The notes under the pieces: model-generated
The model's database searches: none
Seen by the model: only the letters and a program-made list of their open reading frames with translations
Told to the model about the DNA's origin: nothing
Assembly: GCA_028826165.1 (NCBI GenBank)
Contig: JAPDFW010000147.1
Span: 790,814-854,813, forward strand
Direction of reading: 5' to 3'
Length of the DNA: 64,000 bases
Source: Anaeramoeba ignava BMAN
Lineage: Eukaryota > Protista > Anaeramoebae
Translations under genes and position numbers: made by a program
Shown: piece after piece, positions 10,121 through 29,081 of the stretch
How the letters are laid out: each line of letters starts with the position of its first letter
Numbering within the stretch: position 1 is the stretch's first letter

Positions 10121-13100
10121 TTAAATGAAATAAGTCTCAAGTTCATCAACAACCCATTTATTATAAGAACCAGCTAAATAACTTTGAGCTTCATTTGATT
10201 TATATTTAATTCCATCAGGTAGATTATAACTTTTACCAAAATTTGAACAACCAGATTGTAATTTAGAATTTACCAAAATATCATCTATAAATATTTTAAT
10301 AAAGATAAATAATTAATTTTAATAATAATTAATAATAATTTAATTTAAAATTAATTTTATTTTAAATTGAAATAATAATGTTATTTATTATATTAATATT
10401 TTGGATTATTTATTAATTTAATTTTAATTATAATAATAAATATTTATTAAATATAAATTATTTACTATCTATTTTAATAAAGATAAATAATTAATTTTAA
10501 TAATAATTAATAATAATTTAATTTAAAATTAATTTTATTTTAAATTTAAATAATAATATTATTTATTATATTAATATTTTGGATTATTTATTAATTTAAT
10601 TTTAATTATAATAATAATTATTTATTAAATATAAATTATTTACCAACTATTTTAATAAAAATAAATAATTAATTTTAATAATAATTAATAATAATTTAAT
10701 TTAAAATTAATTTTATTTTAAATTAAAATAATAATAATATTTATTATATTAATATTTTGGATTATTTATTAATTTAATTTTAATTATAATAATAAATATT
10801 TATTAAATATAAATTATTTACTATCTATTTTAATAAAGATAAATAATTAATTTTAATAATAATTAATAATAATTTAATTTAAAATTTATTTTATTTTAAA
10901 TTTAAAATAATAATATTATTATTTATTATATTAATATTTTGTATTATTTATTAATTTAATTTTAATTATAATAATAAATATTTATTAAATATAAATTATT
11001 TACTCTCTATTTTAATAAAGATAAATAATTAATTTTAATAATAATTAATAATAATTTAATTTAAAATTAATTTTATTTTTAAATTGAAATAATAATATTA
11101 TTTATTATATTAATATTTTAGATTATTTATTAATTTAATTTTAATTATAATAATAAATATTTATTGAATATAAATTATTTACCCTCTATTTTAATAAAAA
11201 TAAATAATTAATTTTAATAATAATTAATAATAATTTAATTTAAAATTAATTTTATTTTTAAATTTAAATAATAATATTATTTATTATATTAATATTTTTA
11301 GATTATTTATTAATTTAATTTTAATTATAATAATAAATATTTATTAAATATAAATTATTTACCATCTATTTTAATAAATATAAATAATTAATTTTAATAA
11401 TAATTAATAATAATTTAATTTAAAATTAATTTTATTTTTAAATTTAAATAATAATATTATTTATTATATTAATATTTTGGATTATTTATTAATTTAATTT
11501 TAATTATAATAATAAATATTTATTAAATATAAATTATTTACTCTCTATTTTAATAAAAATAAATAATTAATTTTAATAATAATTAATAATAATTTAATTT
11601 AAAATTAATTTTATTTTAAATTTAAATAATAAATATTATTTATTATATTAATATTTTAGATTATTTATTAATTTAATTTTAATTATAATAATAAATATTT
11701 ATTAAATATAAATTATTTACTCTCTATTTTAATAAAAATATAAATAATTAATTTTAATAATAATTAATAATAATTTAATTTAAAATTAATTTTATTTTAA
11801 ATTTAAATAATAATATTATTTATTATATTAATATTTTAGATTATTTATTAATTTAATTTTAATTATAATAATAAATATTTATTAAATATAAATTATTTAC
11901 CATCTATTTTTAATAAAAATAAATAATTAATTTTAATAATAATTAATAATAATTTAATTTAAAATTAATTTTATTTTAAATTGAAAATAATAATGTTATT
12001 TATTATATTAATATTTTAGATTATTTATTAATTTAATTTTAATTATAATAATAAATATTTATTGAATATAAATTATTTACCCTCTATTTTAATAAAGATA
12101 AATAATTAATTTTAATAATAATAATTAATAATAATTTAATTTAAAATTAATTTTATTTTTAAATTTAAATAATAATATTATTTATTATATTAATATTTAT
12201 TTTTATTTATTAATTTAATTTTAATTATAATAATAAATATTTATTAAATATAAAAATTATTTACAATCTATTTTAATAAATATAAATAATTAATTTTTAA
12301 TAATAATTAATAATAATTTAATTTAAAAATTAATTTTATTTTAAATTTAAATAATAATATTATTTTATTATATTAATATTTTAGATTATTTATTAATTTA
12401 ATTTTAATTATAATAATAAATATTTATTAAATATAAATTATTTACTATCTATTTTAATAAAGATAAATAATTAATTTTAATAATAATTAATAATAATTTA
12501 ATTTAAAATTAATTTTATTTTAAATTTAAATAATAATATTATTTATTATATTAATATTTTGGATTATTTATTAATTTAATTTTAATTATAATAATAATTA
12601 TTTATTAAATATAAATTATTTACCATCTATTTTAATAAAAGATAAATAATTAATTTTAATAATAATTAATAATAATTTAATTTAAAATTAATTTTTATTT
12701 TTTAAATTTAAATAATAATATTATTTATTATATTAATATTTTAGATTATTTATTAATTTAATTTTAATTATAATAATAAATATTTATTAAATATAAATTA
12801 TTTACAATCTATTTTAATAAAAATAAATAATTAATTTTAATAATAATTAATAATAATTTAATTTAAAATTAATTTTATTTTTAAATTTAAATAATAATAT
12901 TATTTATTATATTAATATTTTGGATTATTTATTAATTTAATTTTAATTATAATAATAATTATTTATTAAATATAAATTATTTACCCTCTATTTTAATAAA
13001 AATAAATAATTAATTTTAATAATAATTAATAATAATTTAATTTAAAATTAATTTTATTTTAAATTAAAAAATAATAATAATATTTATTATATTAATATTT

Positions 13101-16100
13101 TGGATTATTTATTAATTTAATTTTAATTATAATAATAAATATTTATTAAATATAAATTATTTACCCTCTATTTTAATAAAAATAAATAATTAATTTTAAT
13201 AATAATAATTAATAATAATTTAATTTAAAATTTATTTTATTTTAAATTTAAATAATAATATTATTTATTATATTAATATTTTGGTATTATTTATTAATTT
13301 AATTTTTAATTATAATAATAAATATTTATTAAATATAAATTATTTACTCTCTATTTTAATAAAGATAAATAATTAATTTTAATAATAATTAATAATAATT
13401 TAATTTAAAATTAATTTTATTTTTAAATTGAAATAATAATATTATTTATTATATTAATATTTTGGATTATTTATTAATTTAATTTTAATTATAATAATAA
13501 ATATTTATTGAATATAAATTATTTACCACCTATTTTAATAAAAATAAATAATTAATTTTAATAATAATTAATAATAATTTAATTTAAAATTAATTTTATT
13601 TTTAAATTAAAATAATAATATTATTTATTATATTAATATTTTAGATTATTTATTAATTTAATTTTAATTATAATAATAAATATTTATTAAATATAAATTA
13701 TTTACCATCTATTTTAATAAAGATAAATAATTAATTTTTAATAATAATTAATAATAATTTAATTTAAAATTAATTTTATTTTTAAATTTAAATAATAATA
13801 TTATTTATTATATTAATATTTTTGGATTATTTATTAATTTAATTTTAATTATAATAATAAATATTTATTAAATATAAATTATTTACCAACTATTTTAATA
13901 AAAATAAATAATTAATTTTAATAATAATTAATAATAATTTAAATTTAAAATTAATTTTTATTTTTAAATTAAAATAATAATATTATTTATTATATTAATT
14001 ATTTTAGATTATTTATTAATTTAATTTTAATTATAATAATAAATATTTATTAAATATAAATTATTTACCCTCTCTATTTTTAATAAAAGATAAATAATTA
14101 ATTTTAATAATAATTAATAATAATTTAATTTAAAATTAATTTTATTTTAAATTTAAAAATAATAATATTATTTATTATATTAATATTTTGGATTATTTAT
14201 TAATTTAATTTTAATTATAATAATAAATATTTATTAAATATAATTTATTTACTATCTATTTTAATAAAAATAAATAATTAATTTTAATAATAATTAATAA
14301 TAATTTAATTTAAAATTAATTTTATTTTTAAATTTAAATAATAATATTATTTATTATATTAATATTTTAGATTATTTATTAATTTAATTTTAATAATAAT
14401 AATAAATATTTATTGAATATAAATTATTTACTCACTATTTTAATAAAGATAAATAATTAATTTTAATAATAATTAATAATAATTTAATTTAAAATTAATT
14501 TTATTTTTAAATTTAAATAATAATATTATTTATTATATTAATATTTTGGATTATTTATTAATTTAATTTTAATTATAATAATAAATATTTATTAAATATA
14601 AATTATTTTACCATCTATTTTAATAAATATAAATAATTAATTTTAATAATAATTAATAATAATTTAATTTAAAATTAATTTTTATTTTTAAATTGAAATA
14701 ATAATATTATTTATTATATTAATATTTTGGATTATTTATTAATTTAATTTTAATTATAATAATAAATATTTATTAAATATAAATTATTTACCATCTATTT
14801 TAATAAAGATAAATAATTAATTTTAATAATAATTAATAATAATTTAATCTAAAATTAATTTTATTTTTAAATTTAAATAATAATATTATTTATTATATTA
14901 ATATTTTGGATTATTTATTAATTTAATTTTAATTATAATAATAAATATTTATTAAATATAAATTATTTACCATCTATTTTAATAAAAGATAAATAATTAA
15001 TTTTAATAATAATTAATAAAATAATTTAATTTAAAATTAATTTTATTTTTAAATTTAAATAATAATATTATTTATTATATTAATATTTTGGATTATTTAT
15101 TAATTTAATTTTAATTATAATAATAAATATTTATTGAATATAAATTATTTACCCTCTTATTTTAATAAAAATAAATAATTAATTTTTTTAATAATAATTA
15201 ATAATAATTTAATTTAAAATTAATTTTATTTTTAAATTGAAATAATAATATTATTGATTATATTAATTATTTGGATTATTTATTAATTTAATTTTAATTA
15301 TAATAATAAATATTTATTAAATATAAATTATTTACCATCTATTTTAATAAAAATAAATAATTAATTTTAATAATAATTAATAATAATTTAATTTAAAATT
15401 AATTTTATTTTAAATTTAAATAATAATATTATTTATTATATTAATATTTTGGATTATTTATTAATTTAATTTTAATTATAATAATAAATATTTATTGAAT
15501 ATAAAAATTATTTATATTTACATCCAAACCATGGACCATAACTTAAACTAGAATAAATTGCATAATTTTGTTTATATGTAAACTTTTCTGGTTTTCTATC
15601 TCCTTTATCATTTCTTAATGAAAAAATAAATGCATTTGAATCATTAATGTCTCCTGTATTTCCATTAAATCCAACTTGAGTAAAACCTCCAAAAATAAAA
15701 TTATCTTTTGTTTTGATAATAACTAATGTTTTTCCTTTCTTATCAACTGCTTTATGCCATTTTTTAGCATTAAATCCATCTTTTTTTGCTGAAAATCCTT
15801 TTTTCATTTTAGAAAAAAAATCATTATCATTTATCCATTCTTGTAATTTCTTAACATATTCAATATCTTTAATAATTCTTGTTTCTGAAAATTGAGGAAA
15901 ATTCTTGCTGATTTCTTCCATTTTCCTTTCATATTCCAAATCTTTTTGATATTGATCTCGATATTTATCAAAAATAGGTTGCATTTTCTCAATTTCTTTT
16001 TGATTATCTTGAATAACTTTGTTTTGAATATCAACTAAAAAAGATTTAGGAAAAAAATCAAATTGTTTTAATTTATCAAAATCTTGTTTTGAAATTGAAT

Positions 16101-20571: not shown

Positions 20572-20727
20572 AATTAAAAAGAAAATTTAAAAATAAAATT
20601 TAAAAAGAATTTAAAAAGAATTTCTTTGTTTTATTTTTGAATTCAAAAATTTAAAAATGAAAAAAATGAAAAATGAAAAATTTTTGAATGAAATTTTTGA
20701 TTGAAATTTTTGATTGAATGTTTTTTT

Positions 20728-23334
20728 TTAATATTCGAGTTTTTTTGGAATTTCCCAAGAAAATTCTTCTCTTCCAAAATGACCATAAGTTGAAGTTTTT
20801 GTATAAATAGGATTCAAAAGACCCAATTCCTTAATAATATAAAAAGGACGTAAATCAAAGTTCTTTTTAATAATTTCAACAAGTTTTCGATCAGAAACTT
20901 TTCCAGTACCATAAGAATCAACAAAAATAGAAAGAGGCTCAGAAACACCTATTGAGTAAGAAACCTGGACAAGACAACGCTTAGCCAAACCAGCATGAAC
21001 AATTGATTTAGCGATCCAACGACAAGCATAAGCAGCGGAACGATCAACTTTTGATGGATCTTTTCCAGAAAAGCAACCACCACCATGAGCACCCCATCCA
21101 CCATATGTATCCACAATAATCTTGCGACCTTGAAAACGAAAAAAAACACAAAGAATAACTTGTTAAGTGGGTTTTATTGAGATCCAAACCCAAAAAAAAA
21201 AATCCTCGCTCAACCAGCTCGATTCAAGATTGATCTTGATCATGCTGTTTCGTGAAAGGACACGGAAACAATAACCCGTGCCGAAGAAAGTATGTTTTTA
21301 ATCAAGAAGAAGAAGAGAAAAGTTCTTGAAGGAACTGGTTGGCTTGGCAAAAATTAAAAAGGGGTTAAAAAATGGGAAAAAATTTTTTTTTTTTTGCGAA
21401 TTTTTTTTGCGAATTTTTTTTTTATGAAGAAGAAGAAAAAAATTAGAAATAAAACGAAATAAATACCTGTAAGTCCTGCGTCTCCAAGAGGACCTCCCTC
21501 AACAAATTTTCCTGAGGGATTTAAATGGTAAACAGTTTTGTCATCTAAGTACTTTTCAGGGATAACTGGGGTGATCACTTCGCGTTTAAGATCTTCGCGA
21601 ATTTTTTGGTTGTCAACTTCCTCGACATGTTGGGTCGAGATGAGGACTGTATGAACTCGCACTGGCGTGAGGCTTCCGTCTTGATTCTTTTTGTATTCGA
21701 CGGTAATTTGCGTTTTCCCGTCAGGAAGCATCCATGGAAGGATATTTTTCTTCCGCACCTCAGCTAAGCGCATTGCCAGCTGAGATGCAAGCCAATGCGA
21801 GAGTGGCATATAATTTGGTGTCTCGTCTGTTGCATACCCAAACATTATCCCTTGATCTCCTGCTGTCATATCTTCTGGTTTTTTATCTTTGTGTACTGCT
21901 TGTGCTATTTGTCCGTTTTGTTCTTCTATTGCTACTAATACGTTGCATGTTCGTGAGTCAAATCCTTTTTTGGAATCGTCGTATCCAATTTCTCGGATTT
22001 TGTTTCGGATGATTTTTTGGTAATCTAAATGTGCTGTTGTTGAGATTTCTCCAAATACTAATACCATTCCTGTTTTAACAGCGCATTCTTTATTAATTTT
22101 ATTTAATTTTATTTAAATTTATATAAATAATTTTATTTAATTTTATTTAAATTTTATATAAATAATTTTAATTAATTTTATATAAATAATTTTAATTAAT
22201 TTTATATAAATAATTTTAATTAATTTTATATAAATAATTTTAATTAATTTTATATAAATAATTTTAATTAATTTTATATAATTAATTTTAATTAAATTTA
22301 TATAATTAATTTTATTTAATTTTATATAAATAATTTATTTAAATTTATATAATTAATTCTAATTAAATTTTATATAATTAATTTTATTTAATTTTATATA
22401 AATAATTTTAATTAAATTTATATAATTAATTTTATTTAAATTTATATAAATAATTTTATTTAATTTTATATAATTAATTTTAATTAAATTTATATAAATA
22501 ATTTTAATTAAATTTATATAAATAATTCTAATTAATTTTATACAATTAATTTTAATTAAATTTATATAAATAATTTTATTTAAATTTATATAATAATTTT
22601 ATTTAAATTTATATAATTAATTTTATTTAAATTTATATAAATTAATTTTATTTAATTTTTTTAAATAAATAATTTTATTTAATTTTATATAAATAATTTT
22701 ATTTAATTTTATATAAATAATTTTATTTAATTTTTTATATAAATAATTTTATTTAATTTATATAAATAATTTTTATTTAAATTTATATAAATAATTTTAT
22801 ATTAATTTTAATTTAAATTTATATAAATAATTTTATTTAAATTTATATAATTAATTTTAATTAAATTTATATAATTAATTTTAATTAAATTTATATTAAT
22901 TTTATTTAAATTTATATAATTAATTTTATTTAAATTTATATAATTAATTTTATATAAATAATTTTATTTAAATTTATATAATTAATTTTATATTAATTTT
23001 ATATAAATAATGTTATTTTATATAATTAATTTTATTTAAATTGATGTTCCAAATTGTTACAAAAAAGAAATTATTAATCTTTTTGAAATCTGATTAAAAT
23101 AATTAAAATTTTGTTAATCCAAAAATAATTAAAAAAAAAAATTTTTTTTCTTTCTTTTGTTTTTTTGTTTTTTTTAAATAAATAATTTTTTATTTATTTA
23201 CCACAAGCAACTTTTGAATTAGGATCAACTTTTAAACATTCATCTAAAATAGAATCAGAGATTTGGTCACATATTTTATCAGGATGACCTTCAGTAACTG
23301 ATTCTGAAGAAAATAAAAAATTTCCGTTATCCAT
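20728..23334 (-). CDS. MAT: S-adenosylmethionine synthetase (methionine adenosyltransferase); exons 23334-23202, 22087-21467, 21128-20728
   Basis: [46 protein letters not shown]|[39 protein letters not shown]. Confidence 0.97.
21205..21345 (-). promoter_or_regulatory. Putative structured cis-regulatory RNA in SAM synthetase intron 2
   Basis: Nested sense-strand helices with G-U pairs: CAACCAGUUC/GAGCUGGUUG, UUCAAGA/UCUUGAA, UCUUGAUUA/UGAUCAAGA, GGCACGGG/UCCGUGUC. GC content is far above that of the other introns. Confidence 0.6.
22090..23040. repeat. Intronic ~24-mer AT tandem repeat (MAT intron 1)
   Basis: attaattttatataaataatttta units. Confidence 0.85.
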
Positions 23335-23399
23335 TCTATTGTAAGAAAAAAAAAATGAAAAAGAAAAAAATGAAAAAAAAAAATTTAAAAAATAAAAGC

Positions 23400-23407
23400 T
23401 GAGTCAT
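23400..23407 (-). promoter_or_regulatory. AP-1/Gcn4-type site (ATGACTCA) about 66 bp upstream of the MAT start
   Basis: tgagtcat on + in an otherwise almost GC-free promoter. Confidence 0.35.
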
Positions 23408-23843
23408 AAAAATTGAGTTGTTAAAACTTTTTTTAATTAAAAAATAAAATTAAAATTAAAAAATTAAATTAAAAAAATTAAAAAATTATAAAAAAGGGGT
23501 TCTTTTTTTCCATTTAAAAAATTCAATTAAAAAATAAAATCCAAATCAGAAAAATTTAAGATCAATTTTGATGAAATAATTTTGATCTTTTTCTTTTCAA
23601 TTTTTATTTTAAAAATAAAAGATTATTTTGTAATGAAATTATTTTAAAATTCAATTTCCTTTTTATTTCCTTTTTAAATTAAATTAAAATTCAATTTCCT
23701 TTTTTAGATTAATTTCCTTTTTATTTTAGATTTATTTTGATTAAAATTTTAATTAAAAATAAGAGATTATTTTGTAATGAAATAATATTAGATTAATTTC
23801 CTTTTTATTTTAGATTTATTTTGATTAAAATTTTATTTCTTTT

Positions 23844-27154: not shown

Positions 27155-29081
27155 TCAATTCAAATCTTGAAAATCGTCATTTTTAGTTTCAATCATTGGA
27201 GTTTCTTTTGTTTCAAGTTGACTTGGTTTAAAAACTTTTCTTTTAGGTTCTTTAAACTTTGAAGGTCTCAAACCGAAATAATCAGGTAAATTAGCAATTG
27301 GGCCTCTAACATCATCTAATTGGTAACCAATATACATATCCTTATTACCACCTTGAGGAGAAATAGCTCTAAAAATATCAAGATATTTAAGACTCATTTG
27401 ATATTCACTTTGATTTATATTATCAGGTGAAAGAGCATCTGAGAAGATGTTAAGTGCTGTTGCCTCCGCCTGCGCAATTTGTATACGTGATGTTGCTGTT
27501 CCTTCTGATTTTTTTCTTGTTGATTCTTGTTCTGCTAACCCTAAATTTACTGATACTATTCGTGATCCTTCGGCCTGGATTTTCATCGACATCTTTTTCC
27601 CTTCAGACCTGATGAATTCTCCTCTTCGATGTCTTTCTGCTATCATCTGTTTCTTCATTCCTTCGTTTATTGTTCGACTTGGTGTCAAATCTTGTAACTC
27701 CATTCTTAACTATTTTTTTTTTCATTATTTTTCACTTTTTTTTTTGTTATGATTTTTTTTTTTTTTTCACTTACAACTTCAATTCCCCATGATAAAAATA
27801 ATTGAGAAAATTCTCGAACTAAATAATCATTAATTCTTTCTTGAGATTGAAGTGCCTAATTTTAATTTTAATTTTAATTTTAATTTTAATATTAATTTTA
27901 ATTTTCAAATGAATTTTCAAATGAATTTTAATTTGAATTTGAATTTTAATTTTAATTTTAATTTTAATTTTAATTTTCAAATGAATTTTAATATTATAAA
28001 TGAATTTTAATTTTAATTTTAATTTTCAAATGAATTTTAATATTATAAATGAATTTAAATTTTAATTTTAATTTTAATTTGAATTTTAATTTTAATTTTA
28101 TAAATGAATAATTTTAATTATAATTTTAATTTGAATATTAATTTTAATTTTAATTTTAATTCTAATTTTAATTTTAATTTAAATTTTAATTTTAATTTGA
28201 ATTTTAATTTTAATTTTAATTTTAATTATAATTTTAATTTTAATTTGAATTTTTTGTACTTCATTAAAAGTCATATTCCCAAACACTTCTTTAATTTGTG
28301 TTTGTGCAGTATTAGATAAAGCTCCTTGTAAATCATCAATTTCATAAACAGCCTTTAAAACATCTGAAATTCGATAATACATTAAAGCATTAACATCTAA
28401 TAAAACAGTATCTTTTCTAAAAAAATTAAAATTTTTAATCATTTCAATTCCAAATAAGTTCCAAATAAAAAATAATCATTTTAATTCTTCATAAAATTTA
28501 CGTATAAACTTCTTGAGGAAGGAAATTAAACACTGATTCTCTTTTGTCAATTCGATAATGTGTTGAACTAATCAAATTTTAAATTGAAAATTCATTTTAA
28601 AATTAAATTGAAAATTAAATTGAAAATTCAAATTAAAATTCAAATTAAAATTAAATTGTGATTTTGAATTTTTTACGTATCATCTTTAACATCTCCTGTT
28701 TCAGCAATAGAAACTTTTCTCCAATGAAAAGAACGAGGTGAATCAACAAATGGTGCAACAAAATGAAGTCCACTTTCAAGAAGCTATTAAAATAATTTTA
28801 AAAAAAAATATTTTAATTTAAATTTTATTAATTTTAATTTTATTTTATTTTTTACCTTTCGAAATTTTCCAAATCTTTCAATAACAATTGCTTCTGATTC
28901 ATGAACAATGTACATTGATTTATAAAGAAGCAAAATAACAATTAACACAATCTATTATTTTGAATTTCAAATTATTATTAAAATTATTAATAAAATTATT
29001 AATAAAATTATTATTAAATTTATTATTAAAATTTCTTACAGCTGCTGCTACAATTCCAACAATTAAACCAATTGATGCCAT
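27155..29081 (-). CDS. SPFH/band-7 (stomatin-like) protein with N-terminal TM, about 7 exons
   Basis: MASIGLIVGIVAAA|IVLIVILLLYKSMYIVHESEAIVIERFGKF, GLHFVAPFVD, FNFLPQEVYT, LDVNALMYYRISD, QMIAERHRRGEFIRSEG. Confidence 0.88.

Follow-up and report, generated by a model that had tools for sequence, protein, structure and literature searches.

Two predicted GC-rich RNA folds, in intron 2 and exon 2 of the S-adenosylmethionine synthetase gene of Anaeramoeba ignava, as a candidate cis-acting architecture

The gene for S-adenosylmethionine (SAM) synthetase of the protist Anaeramoeba ignava BMAN lies on the minus strand of a 64,000-nt stretch of contig JAPDFW010000147.1 (assembly GCA_028826165.1, positions 790,814 to 854,813), hereafter the window, in whose coordinates all positions are given. 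Its pre-mRNA is predicted to carry two unusually stable GC-rich folds, a rod in intron 2 and a four-way junction in exon 2. The open reading frame (ORF) of exon 2, which runs into the intron, shows 100% identity to the NCBI protein 's-adenosylmethionine synthetase [Anaeramoeba ignava]' (P0001, 384 aa), and P0001 is the exact translation of exons 1-3 when these are joined by a local script. The 42.8-Mb A. ignava assembly contains the gene only once, and its database product is the canonical 384-aa form only. The exon-2 ORF or the database protein served as query in the homology searches, and the joined coding sequence was used only in the local translation, codon and folding scripts. The gene is laid out as follows.

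23202..23334, minus strand: exon 1, with the start codon (translation check)
22088..23201, minus strand: intron 1, 1114 nt, about 2% GC, with a 24-nt AT satellite in about 39 copies (repeat and composition analysis)
21467..22087, minus strand: exon 2, its first part rich in A at third codon positions and nearly free of structure, its middle GC-rich and structured
21129..21466, minus strand: intron 2, 338 nt, 30.5% GC, GT..AG, phase 1, interrupting the protein after GDAGLTG
20728..21128, minus strand: exon 3, stop codon included, third codon positions T-rich

A sequence-only reading of this stretch had singled out a 338-nt intron of the SAM synthetase gene, and the intron is indeed there, a GT-AG intron at 21466-21129 of the minus strand. 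It holds the following elements.

21208..21343, minus strand: the rod, 136 nt, 41% GC, helices A-D with 12x4 and 16x16 internal loops, -41.1 kcal/mol (minimum-free-energy fold)
21259..21282, minus strand: apical helix D, GGCACGGG with UCCGUGUC, 8-nt loop, -12.1 kcal/mol (minimum-free-energy fold)
21246..21270, minus strand: alternative hairpin UGUUUcCGUG with CACGAAACA, which excludes helix D, -8.1 kcal/mol (fold)
21245..21246, minus strand: cryptic AG, whose use as an acceptor would yield GCA TGA and thus an immediate stop (from the sequence)
21192..21202, minus strand: run of 11 U, five bases past the rod
21168..21192, minus strand: small hairpin GGGUUU...AAACCC with 7 bp around an 11-nt loop, adjoining the branch-like motif on its upstream side (fold)
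21162..21167, minus strand: CUUAAC, putative branch point, some 34 nt upstream of the acceptor AG (21130-21129)

Each pairing listed by that reading recurs in the minimum-energy fold. At the base of the rod, a 12+2 bp helix (21343/21332-21220/21208) is separated from a 7-bp helix (21330-21324 with 21223-21229) by a small internal loop only; the 12x4 and 16x16 loops lie above, where 21307-21299 pairs with 21234-21242 and 21282-21275 with 21259-21266. The GGGUUU...AAACCC hairpin that it had placed before the productive acceptor was also found (21192-21168, 7 bp). A joint fold of exon 2, intron 2 and exon 3 still contains the rod, and both the rod and the exonic junction are kept in the global folds (pre-mRNA and mature coding sequence). 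The run of U behind the rod is not diagnostic, because such runs are common in these introns. The global fold of the pre-mRNA also pairs the end of exon 2 and the donor with the acceptor region (21481-21489/21128-21136, 9 bp with three G-U, and 21466-21471/21147-21152, 6 bp); with this end-to-end pairing of intron 2, the intron ends would meet and the productive AG would be covered.

Several splice-like signals lie within or beside the rod. The AG at 21246-21245 and the GCA TGA stop that would follow from its use are present as had been claimed, and the AG lies in an internal loop adjoining helix C. Helix C itself contains a branch-like UUGAUUAAA stretch, while an acceptor-like CCAAG/ (21344-21343; the slash marks the cut) sits at the rod foot after a pyrimidine tract and resembles the productive acceptor UUUUCAAG/. 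The mutually exclusive alternative hairpin exists too, but in a minor role (-8.1 kcal/mol against -12.1 kcal/mol for helix D): the whole-rod conformer that carries it reaches -38.0 kcal/mol, compared with -41.1 kcal/mol, and makes up about 3% of the ensemble.

The rod is far from what its surroundings would produce. A. ignava introns are 91.86% A+T (PMC11550330), and the GC content of the rod is 41% versus an intron average of about 8%, with the intron flanks of the rod at 20% and 29%. A scan of 264 kb, made up of the window and twenty randomly chosen 10-kb genome pieces, sought 100-nt stretches outside ORFs of at least 60 aa whose GC was 0.36 or more. Three places were returned, namely the rod, a tRNA and one stretch that proved to be a short coding exon, so that the rod and the tRNA are the only non-coding GC islands in 264 kb. 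Dinucleotide shuffles of the rod had a mean of -25.8 kcal/mol, giving a z score (z) of -4.57 with none of 200 shuffles as stable; a rerun gave -4.55 (0/100), and the whole of intron 2 gave -3.27. The folding null comprised 188 GC-matched 140-nt windows (376 strand-windows) from a random 200 kb of the same genome, and its six most extreme windows, rerun with 100 shuffles, reached z of -2.1 to -3.5 at worst. In 33 control windows from other GC-rich exons of the 64-kb window, the mean z was 0.04 and the minimum -1.8. Among roughly 440 strand-windows, the rod and the exonic junction are the two most extreme. The next most structured GC-rich windows of the 200-kb random sample are L096:451-590 (minus), L109:811-950 (plus) and L108:6931-7070, with z of -3.1 to -3.5 over 100 shuffles.

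A sliding fold scan of the gene located the second module in exon 2.

21656..21801, minus strand: exonic four-way junction, 146 nt, codons about 139-190 (sliding fold scan)
21801-21791 with 21666-21656, minus strand: junction helix P1, 11 bp, the closing helix
21788-21775 with 21769-21755, minus strand: junction helix P2, 12+2 bp
21754-21750 with 21740-21736, minus strand: junction helix P3, 5 bp
21732-21718 with 21703-21669, minus strand: junction helix P4, 2+6+6 bp

The 156-nt stretch enclosing the junction (21805-21650) folds at -63.3 kcal/mol, with a dinucleotide z of -4.4 to -4.56 for the sense strand and -2.4 for the antisense. Its helices are built of codons that are locally rare (CUC, UCG, CAG, CUG, CGC, GAG, GUG, CGG and ACG), and GC-ending codons favor paired third positions (19/30 vs 7/22). 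When synonymous codons were permuted within the region, with both the protein and the codon composition preserved, the energy rose to -39.7 +/- 3.4 kcal/mol, and none of 300 permutations was as stable as the natural sequence (z -6.96). The same permutation gave a mean z of -0.15 and a minimum of -2.39 over 58 control windows; in the homologous region of 75 further MetK genes, a set that leaves out five metagenome loci with 'human-gut-metagenome' contig names, the mean was -0.23 and the minimum -2.75. The exonic junction is therefore lineage-specific and encoded at synonymous sites, which is difficult to account for unless nucleic-acid structure is under selection. Rod and junction show no significant similarity or complementarity to each other. 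The 15 nt of the intron at 21236-21250 can pair with exon 3 (20988-21002), a complementarity no better than chance in a set of 28 such pairs.

Third codon positions of the whole SAM synthetase coding sequence (20728-23334) form a mosaic that switches roughly at the introns. The fraction of T at third positions (T3) is 0.53-0.60 in exon 1 and 0.6-0.7 in exon 3; the start of exon 2 has an A fraction (A3) of up to 0.77, a T3 of about 0.07 and a folding energy of -10.6 kcal/mol per 140 nt; and the middle of exon 2 has a GC fraction (GC3) of about 0.5. In neighboring genes, A3 and T3 are both about 0.45 and GC3 is about 0.1. A patchwork origin of the gene or an RNA-level constraint on exon 2 are both possible causes of this mosaic. 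The best matches differ between gene segments, and they are uninformative on a chimeric origin because of selection bias and the strong conservation of the protein.

Neither module has a second copy in the 42.8-Mb genome, whether sought by BLAST, by covariance model or with 22- and 25-mers allowing up to 3 mismatches. Both being unique in the genome, they belong to no repeat family, and a repeat or introner family is ruled out for rod and junction alike, as BLAST, the covariance model and the near-exact words brought up no second locus. In relatives, two word searches (with the exon-2 ORF and with P0001 residues 300-384) gave no A. flamelloides orthologue; the best non-self matches in the word searches were 67-73% identical and came mostly from transcript-length contigs. 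A metagenome scan returned only intronless genes with at most 68% identity.

As modeled, the rod and the exonic junction are two independent GC-rich structured modules on one pre-mRNA. SAM synthetase is under RNA-based regulation in other organisms, through riboswitches in bacteria and METTL16-dependent splicing in animals. Because the rod is non-random and highly atypical and lies in a gene classically under RNA feedback, it is a credible functional RNA element, and the earlier suggestion of a non-random, probably functional element gains support from the rod statistics and from the exon 2 domain shaped at synonymous sites. The rod is probably a real and selectively maintained RNA structure of intron 2. 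We tentatively favor a reading, which may well prove wrong, in which a selected, gene-specific cis-acting RNA architecture on the SAM synthetase pre-mRNA sets the level of productive mRNA, because the two most extreme folds share one transcript and one of them carries the synonymous-site signature together with a sense-strand preference. That the rod acts as sense-strand RNA, that it affects splicing and that it has any link to SAM are steps that we infer.

The rod is located between the donor (21466) and the CUUAAC (21167-21162). When folded, it would take about 136 nt out of the donor-to-branch path and would bury both UUGAUUAAA in helix C and the CCAAG/ site at its foot, with the 21245 AG held in an internal loop. 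With these internal signals buried, the distal productive acceptor would be used. Opening or remodeling of the rod by a protein, a helicase, temperature or conceivably a metabolite might expose the signals or slow splicing, and transcripts with an early stop would be the outcome. In yeast introns, 'zipper' stems form between donor and branch point, and hairpins hide AGs or cause them to be skipped, as in the APE2 thermosensor. The likeness to this structure-guided splicing lies in a stable stem between the donor and the branch region, with AGs within or beside it, that would act in cis on the pre-mRNA. The rod, known here from predicted folds, differs from the yeast stems in being much larger, in having 41% GC in a landscape of about 92% AT and in having an exonic module alongside. 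A stranded polyA+ RNA-seq data set of A. ignava BMAN comes from the genome paper (PMC11550330).

A number of observations weigh against this cis-acting reading. The long introns of the genome, intron 1 included, are spliced without GC structure, so that a distance-shortening role of the rod is not required. The strand preference of the rod is weak: the sequence-only reading had noted G-U pairs confined to the sense strand, and four pairs are indeed G-U in the sense strand only (21334-21218, 21300-21241, 21281-21260 and 21275-21266), but the antisense strand folds with other pairs to -40.8 kcal/mol, against -41.1 kcal/mol for the sense, at z of -3.2 to -3.35. The rod arms are homologous beyond the helices, loops included, as after an inverted duplication, and the loops are about 31% GC (counted from the sequence), which could mean that the insertion is young and not that selection is at work. 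A. flamelloides, the only relative to have been sequenced, has just 37% average protein identity (PMC11550330).

These points lead to the main rival, in which the rod is a neutral DNA palindrome, either a single-copy fossil of a miniature inverted-repeat transposable element (MITE) or foldback element or a recent foreign or inverted-duplicated insertion into a T-run of the intron, its GC content reflecting youth and no selected RNA function. We regard it as somewhat unlikely, but a palindrome at the DNA level would fit both the equal antisense energy and the arm homology outside the helices. It would account for both strands folding equally well, for arms whose alignment extends along most of their length and takes in the loops, for loops that are, like the stems, far above normal intron GC, and for the ends CCAAGCCAACCAG and CTGGTTGAGCGAGG, which form imperfect terminal inverted repeats between T-runs; lateral transfer is also frequent in this lineage (PMC11550330). 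With its roughly 145 nt, imperfect terminal inverted repeats, rod shape on either strand and intronic position, the element resembles MITEs and foldback elements, but it is single copy, BLAST, the covariance model and near-exact words having turned up no relative in the genome, and it has no clear target-site duplication, the flanking TTTTTG and T-run being indistinguishable from background as such. A neutral insertion also leaves the exonic structure at synonymous sites of the same gene unexplained, and besides the tRNA no further such non-coding GC island occurs in the 264 kb. Less probable, and in our view unlikely, is a reading in which the rod belongs to a stable small RNA, as its precursor or its body, that is released from the spliced intron or transcribed on its own; it could be a Dicer substrate (miRNA-like or hairpin siRNA) or a rod-shaped polymerase III-type (vault-like) RNA. 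The only other non-coding GC island is a tRNA, an 11-U run starts five bases past the rod, and the genome holds three Piwi-domain loci, a Dicer-like ORF that carries two RNase III domains, and genes for about eight major vault proteins and for TROVE proteins, with no vault or Y RNA detectable by Rfam. However, U-runs are ubiquitous in these introns, the rod has no Rfam match of any kind and no C, D or H boxes, its 12x4 and 16x16 internal loops are unlike those of Dicer substrates, and two arm words (22 and 25 nt) have no genomic match or reverse-complement site within 3 mismatches. Vault RNA (RF00006) and Y RNA (RF00019) had no match in the window region or the whole genome, and no box A/B consensus was seen by eye; an unrecognized rod-shaped vault- or Y-type RNA is possible and there is room for it, but nothing positive ties the rod to the vault and TROVE proteins. 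Three TROVE-domain proteins are encoded at G000:C35:540070-541305, C85:20409-21644 and C14:19351-20682, and vault repeats occur on contigs C83, C71, C87, C56, C72 and C73. The GC island might also be a poison exon or alternative acceptor, in which CCAAG/ or the 21245 AG would add a stop within 1-14 codons and the rod would hide or expose the sites. Exons of this genome are marked by their GC against introns of about 92% AT (PMC11550330) and the rod is exon-like in composition, CCAAG/ is like the productive acceptor UUUUCAAG/ with a pyrimidine tract before it, and an early in-frame stop lies downstream of either site; all the same, we consider it improbable, as the island is followed by no good donor (GUUGAG at 21215 is unlike the local GUAAA/GUAUU donors) and only the canonical 384-aa product is in the database. 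Among other RNA genes, a box C/D small nucleolar RNA (snoRNA) was rejected for lack of CUGA and UGAUGA on either intron strand, the Rfam U8 match at E 5.9 being far below threshold, and a box H/ACA snoRNA for lack of ANANNA after the rod, for a 3' hairpin of 7 bp without a pocket and for an unfit pocket-to-box distance. With no C, D or H box and no Rfam snoRNA near threshold, the snoRNA alternative of the sequence-only reading falls away. A tRNA-like gene was likewise rejected, ARAGORN having found none, and bacterial-type promoter or terminator signals were not found.

The remaining accounts tie the structures to SAM. In the model first put forward for this intron, a SAM- or S-adenosylhomocysteine (SAH)-binding riboswitch-like element would switch back and forth from helix D to the alternative hairpin, so that high SAM exposes the 21245 acceptor. 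Two mutually exclusive hairpins do exist, SAM synthetase is a classic target of RNA-based SAM feedback in bacteria and animals (PMC8208822), and the gene bears two exceptional structures of which one is a four-way junction. The toggle is very improbable, though, given that the alternative hairpin is a thermodynamically minor fold of a sort that any RNA commonly offers, that its whole-rod conformer is unremarkable and 3 kcal/mol less stable, that the rod lacks a multi-helix pocket and that the isolated domains show no likeness to SAM, SAH or thiamine pyrophosphate (TPP) riboswitch models at E up to 10. An Rfam cmscan at the same limit over 20600-23500 and over each module alone listed no riboswitch family and nothing near threshold, so that a riboswitch of a known class (SAM-I to VI, SAM/SAH, SAH or TPP) found no match. 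A SAM-sensing switch is possible but unsupported. That rod and junction jointly form a metabolite-responsive switch, for SAM, SAH or a related methionine-cycle compound, governing SAM synthetase splicing is likewise a long shot; if true, this would give a eukaryote a riboswitch other than TPP, in a class with no relation to the SAM riboswitches of bacteria, and the host would be an anaerobic, deep-branching protist that relies on B12 from its symbionts for the methionine cycle. The TPP riboswitches that eukaryotes carry in introns of fungi, algae and plants offer a likeness in that a metabolite-pathway gene has structured RNA near alternative splice signals, and bacterial SAM riboswitches upstream of metK concern the gene of the same enzyme, the exonic module sharing its four-helix junction topology with SAM-I. 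The modules, known here from predicted folds alone, differ from these riboswitches in having no covariance-model match and in that one of them lies inside the coding sequence. A sensor of the METTL16/METT-10 type, with N6-methyladenosine on a structured intron site blocking or promoting splicing according to the SAM level, is extremely improbable. This mechanism is conserved from worms to mammals (PMC8208822), and A. ignava has a PF05971 (METTL16/RlmF family) gene at G000:C100:77605-78208 (125 and 49 bits), matches that do not settle METTL16 versus RlmF orthology. The METTL16-MAT2A pair of mammals and METT-10-sams-3/4 of Caenorhabditis elegans share the target gene and couple a structured element to an intron (PMC8208822); in the worm, an upstream cryptic acceptor and intron retention give non-coding isoforms, and a METTL16-family gene is found in A. 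ignava too. By the motif definition of PMC8208822, however, neither the nonamer UACAGAGAA nor the worm UACAGAAAC occurs in the introns or at either acceptor with up to 1 mismatch. The nearest match, UACAAAAAC, is in exon 3 at 20803 and lacks the G, and the productive acceptor reads UUUUCAAG/G. Compared with the METTL16/METT-10 systems, the loop nonamer UACAGAGAA/UACAGAAAC is thus missing, the acceptor lies outside such a motif, and a 136-nt rod stands in place of a stem-loop of about 30 nt. The sequence-only reading had itself seen no UACAGAGAA-like nonamer in intron 2, which holds true, while its methylation-sensing alternative is unsupported, the nonamer being missing from the intron and both acceptors despite the METTL16-family gene.

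Neutral sequence here decays to about 8% GC, yet an essential single-copy gene keeps two unique GC-rich folds, and the exonic one is written in synonymous codon choice at the cost of normal codon usage. Under the cis-acting reading, they would be a precise candidate for a new post-transcriptional control element; if inert, they would still be a clean case of structured sequence persisting against extreme AT pressure.

Elsewhere in the window, a tandem array at 10292-15514 consists of a 179-nt unit repeated 29 times with 95% identity. An SPFH/stomatin-like gene on the minus strand has a short GC-rich exon (…ERFGKFRK / LLESGLHFVAPFVD…) at 28651-28950 with GUAAAAAAU donors flanking it, and provides a local example of splice signals.

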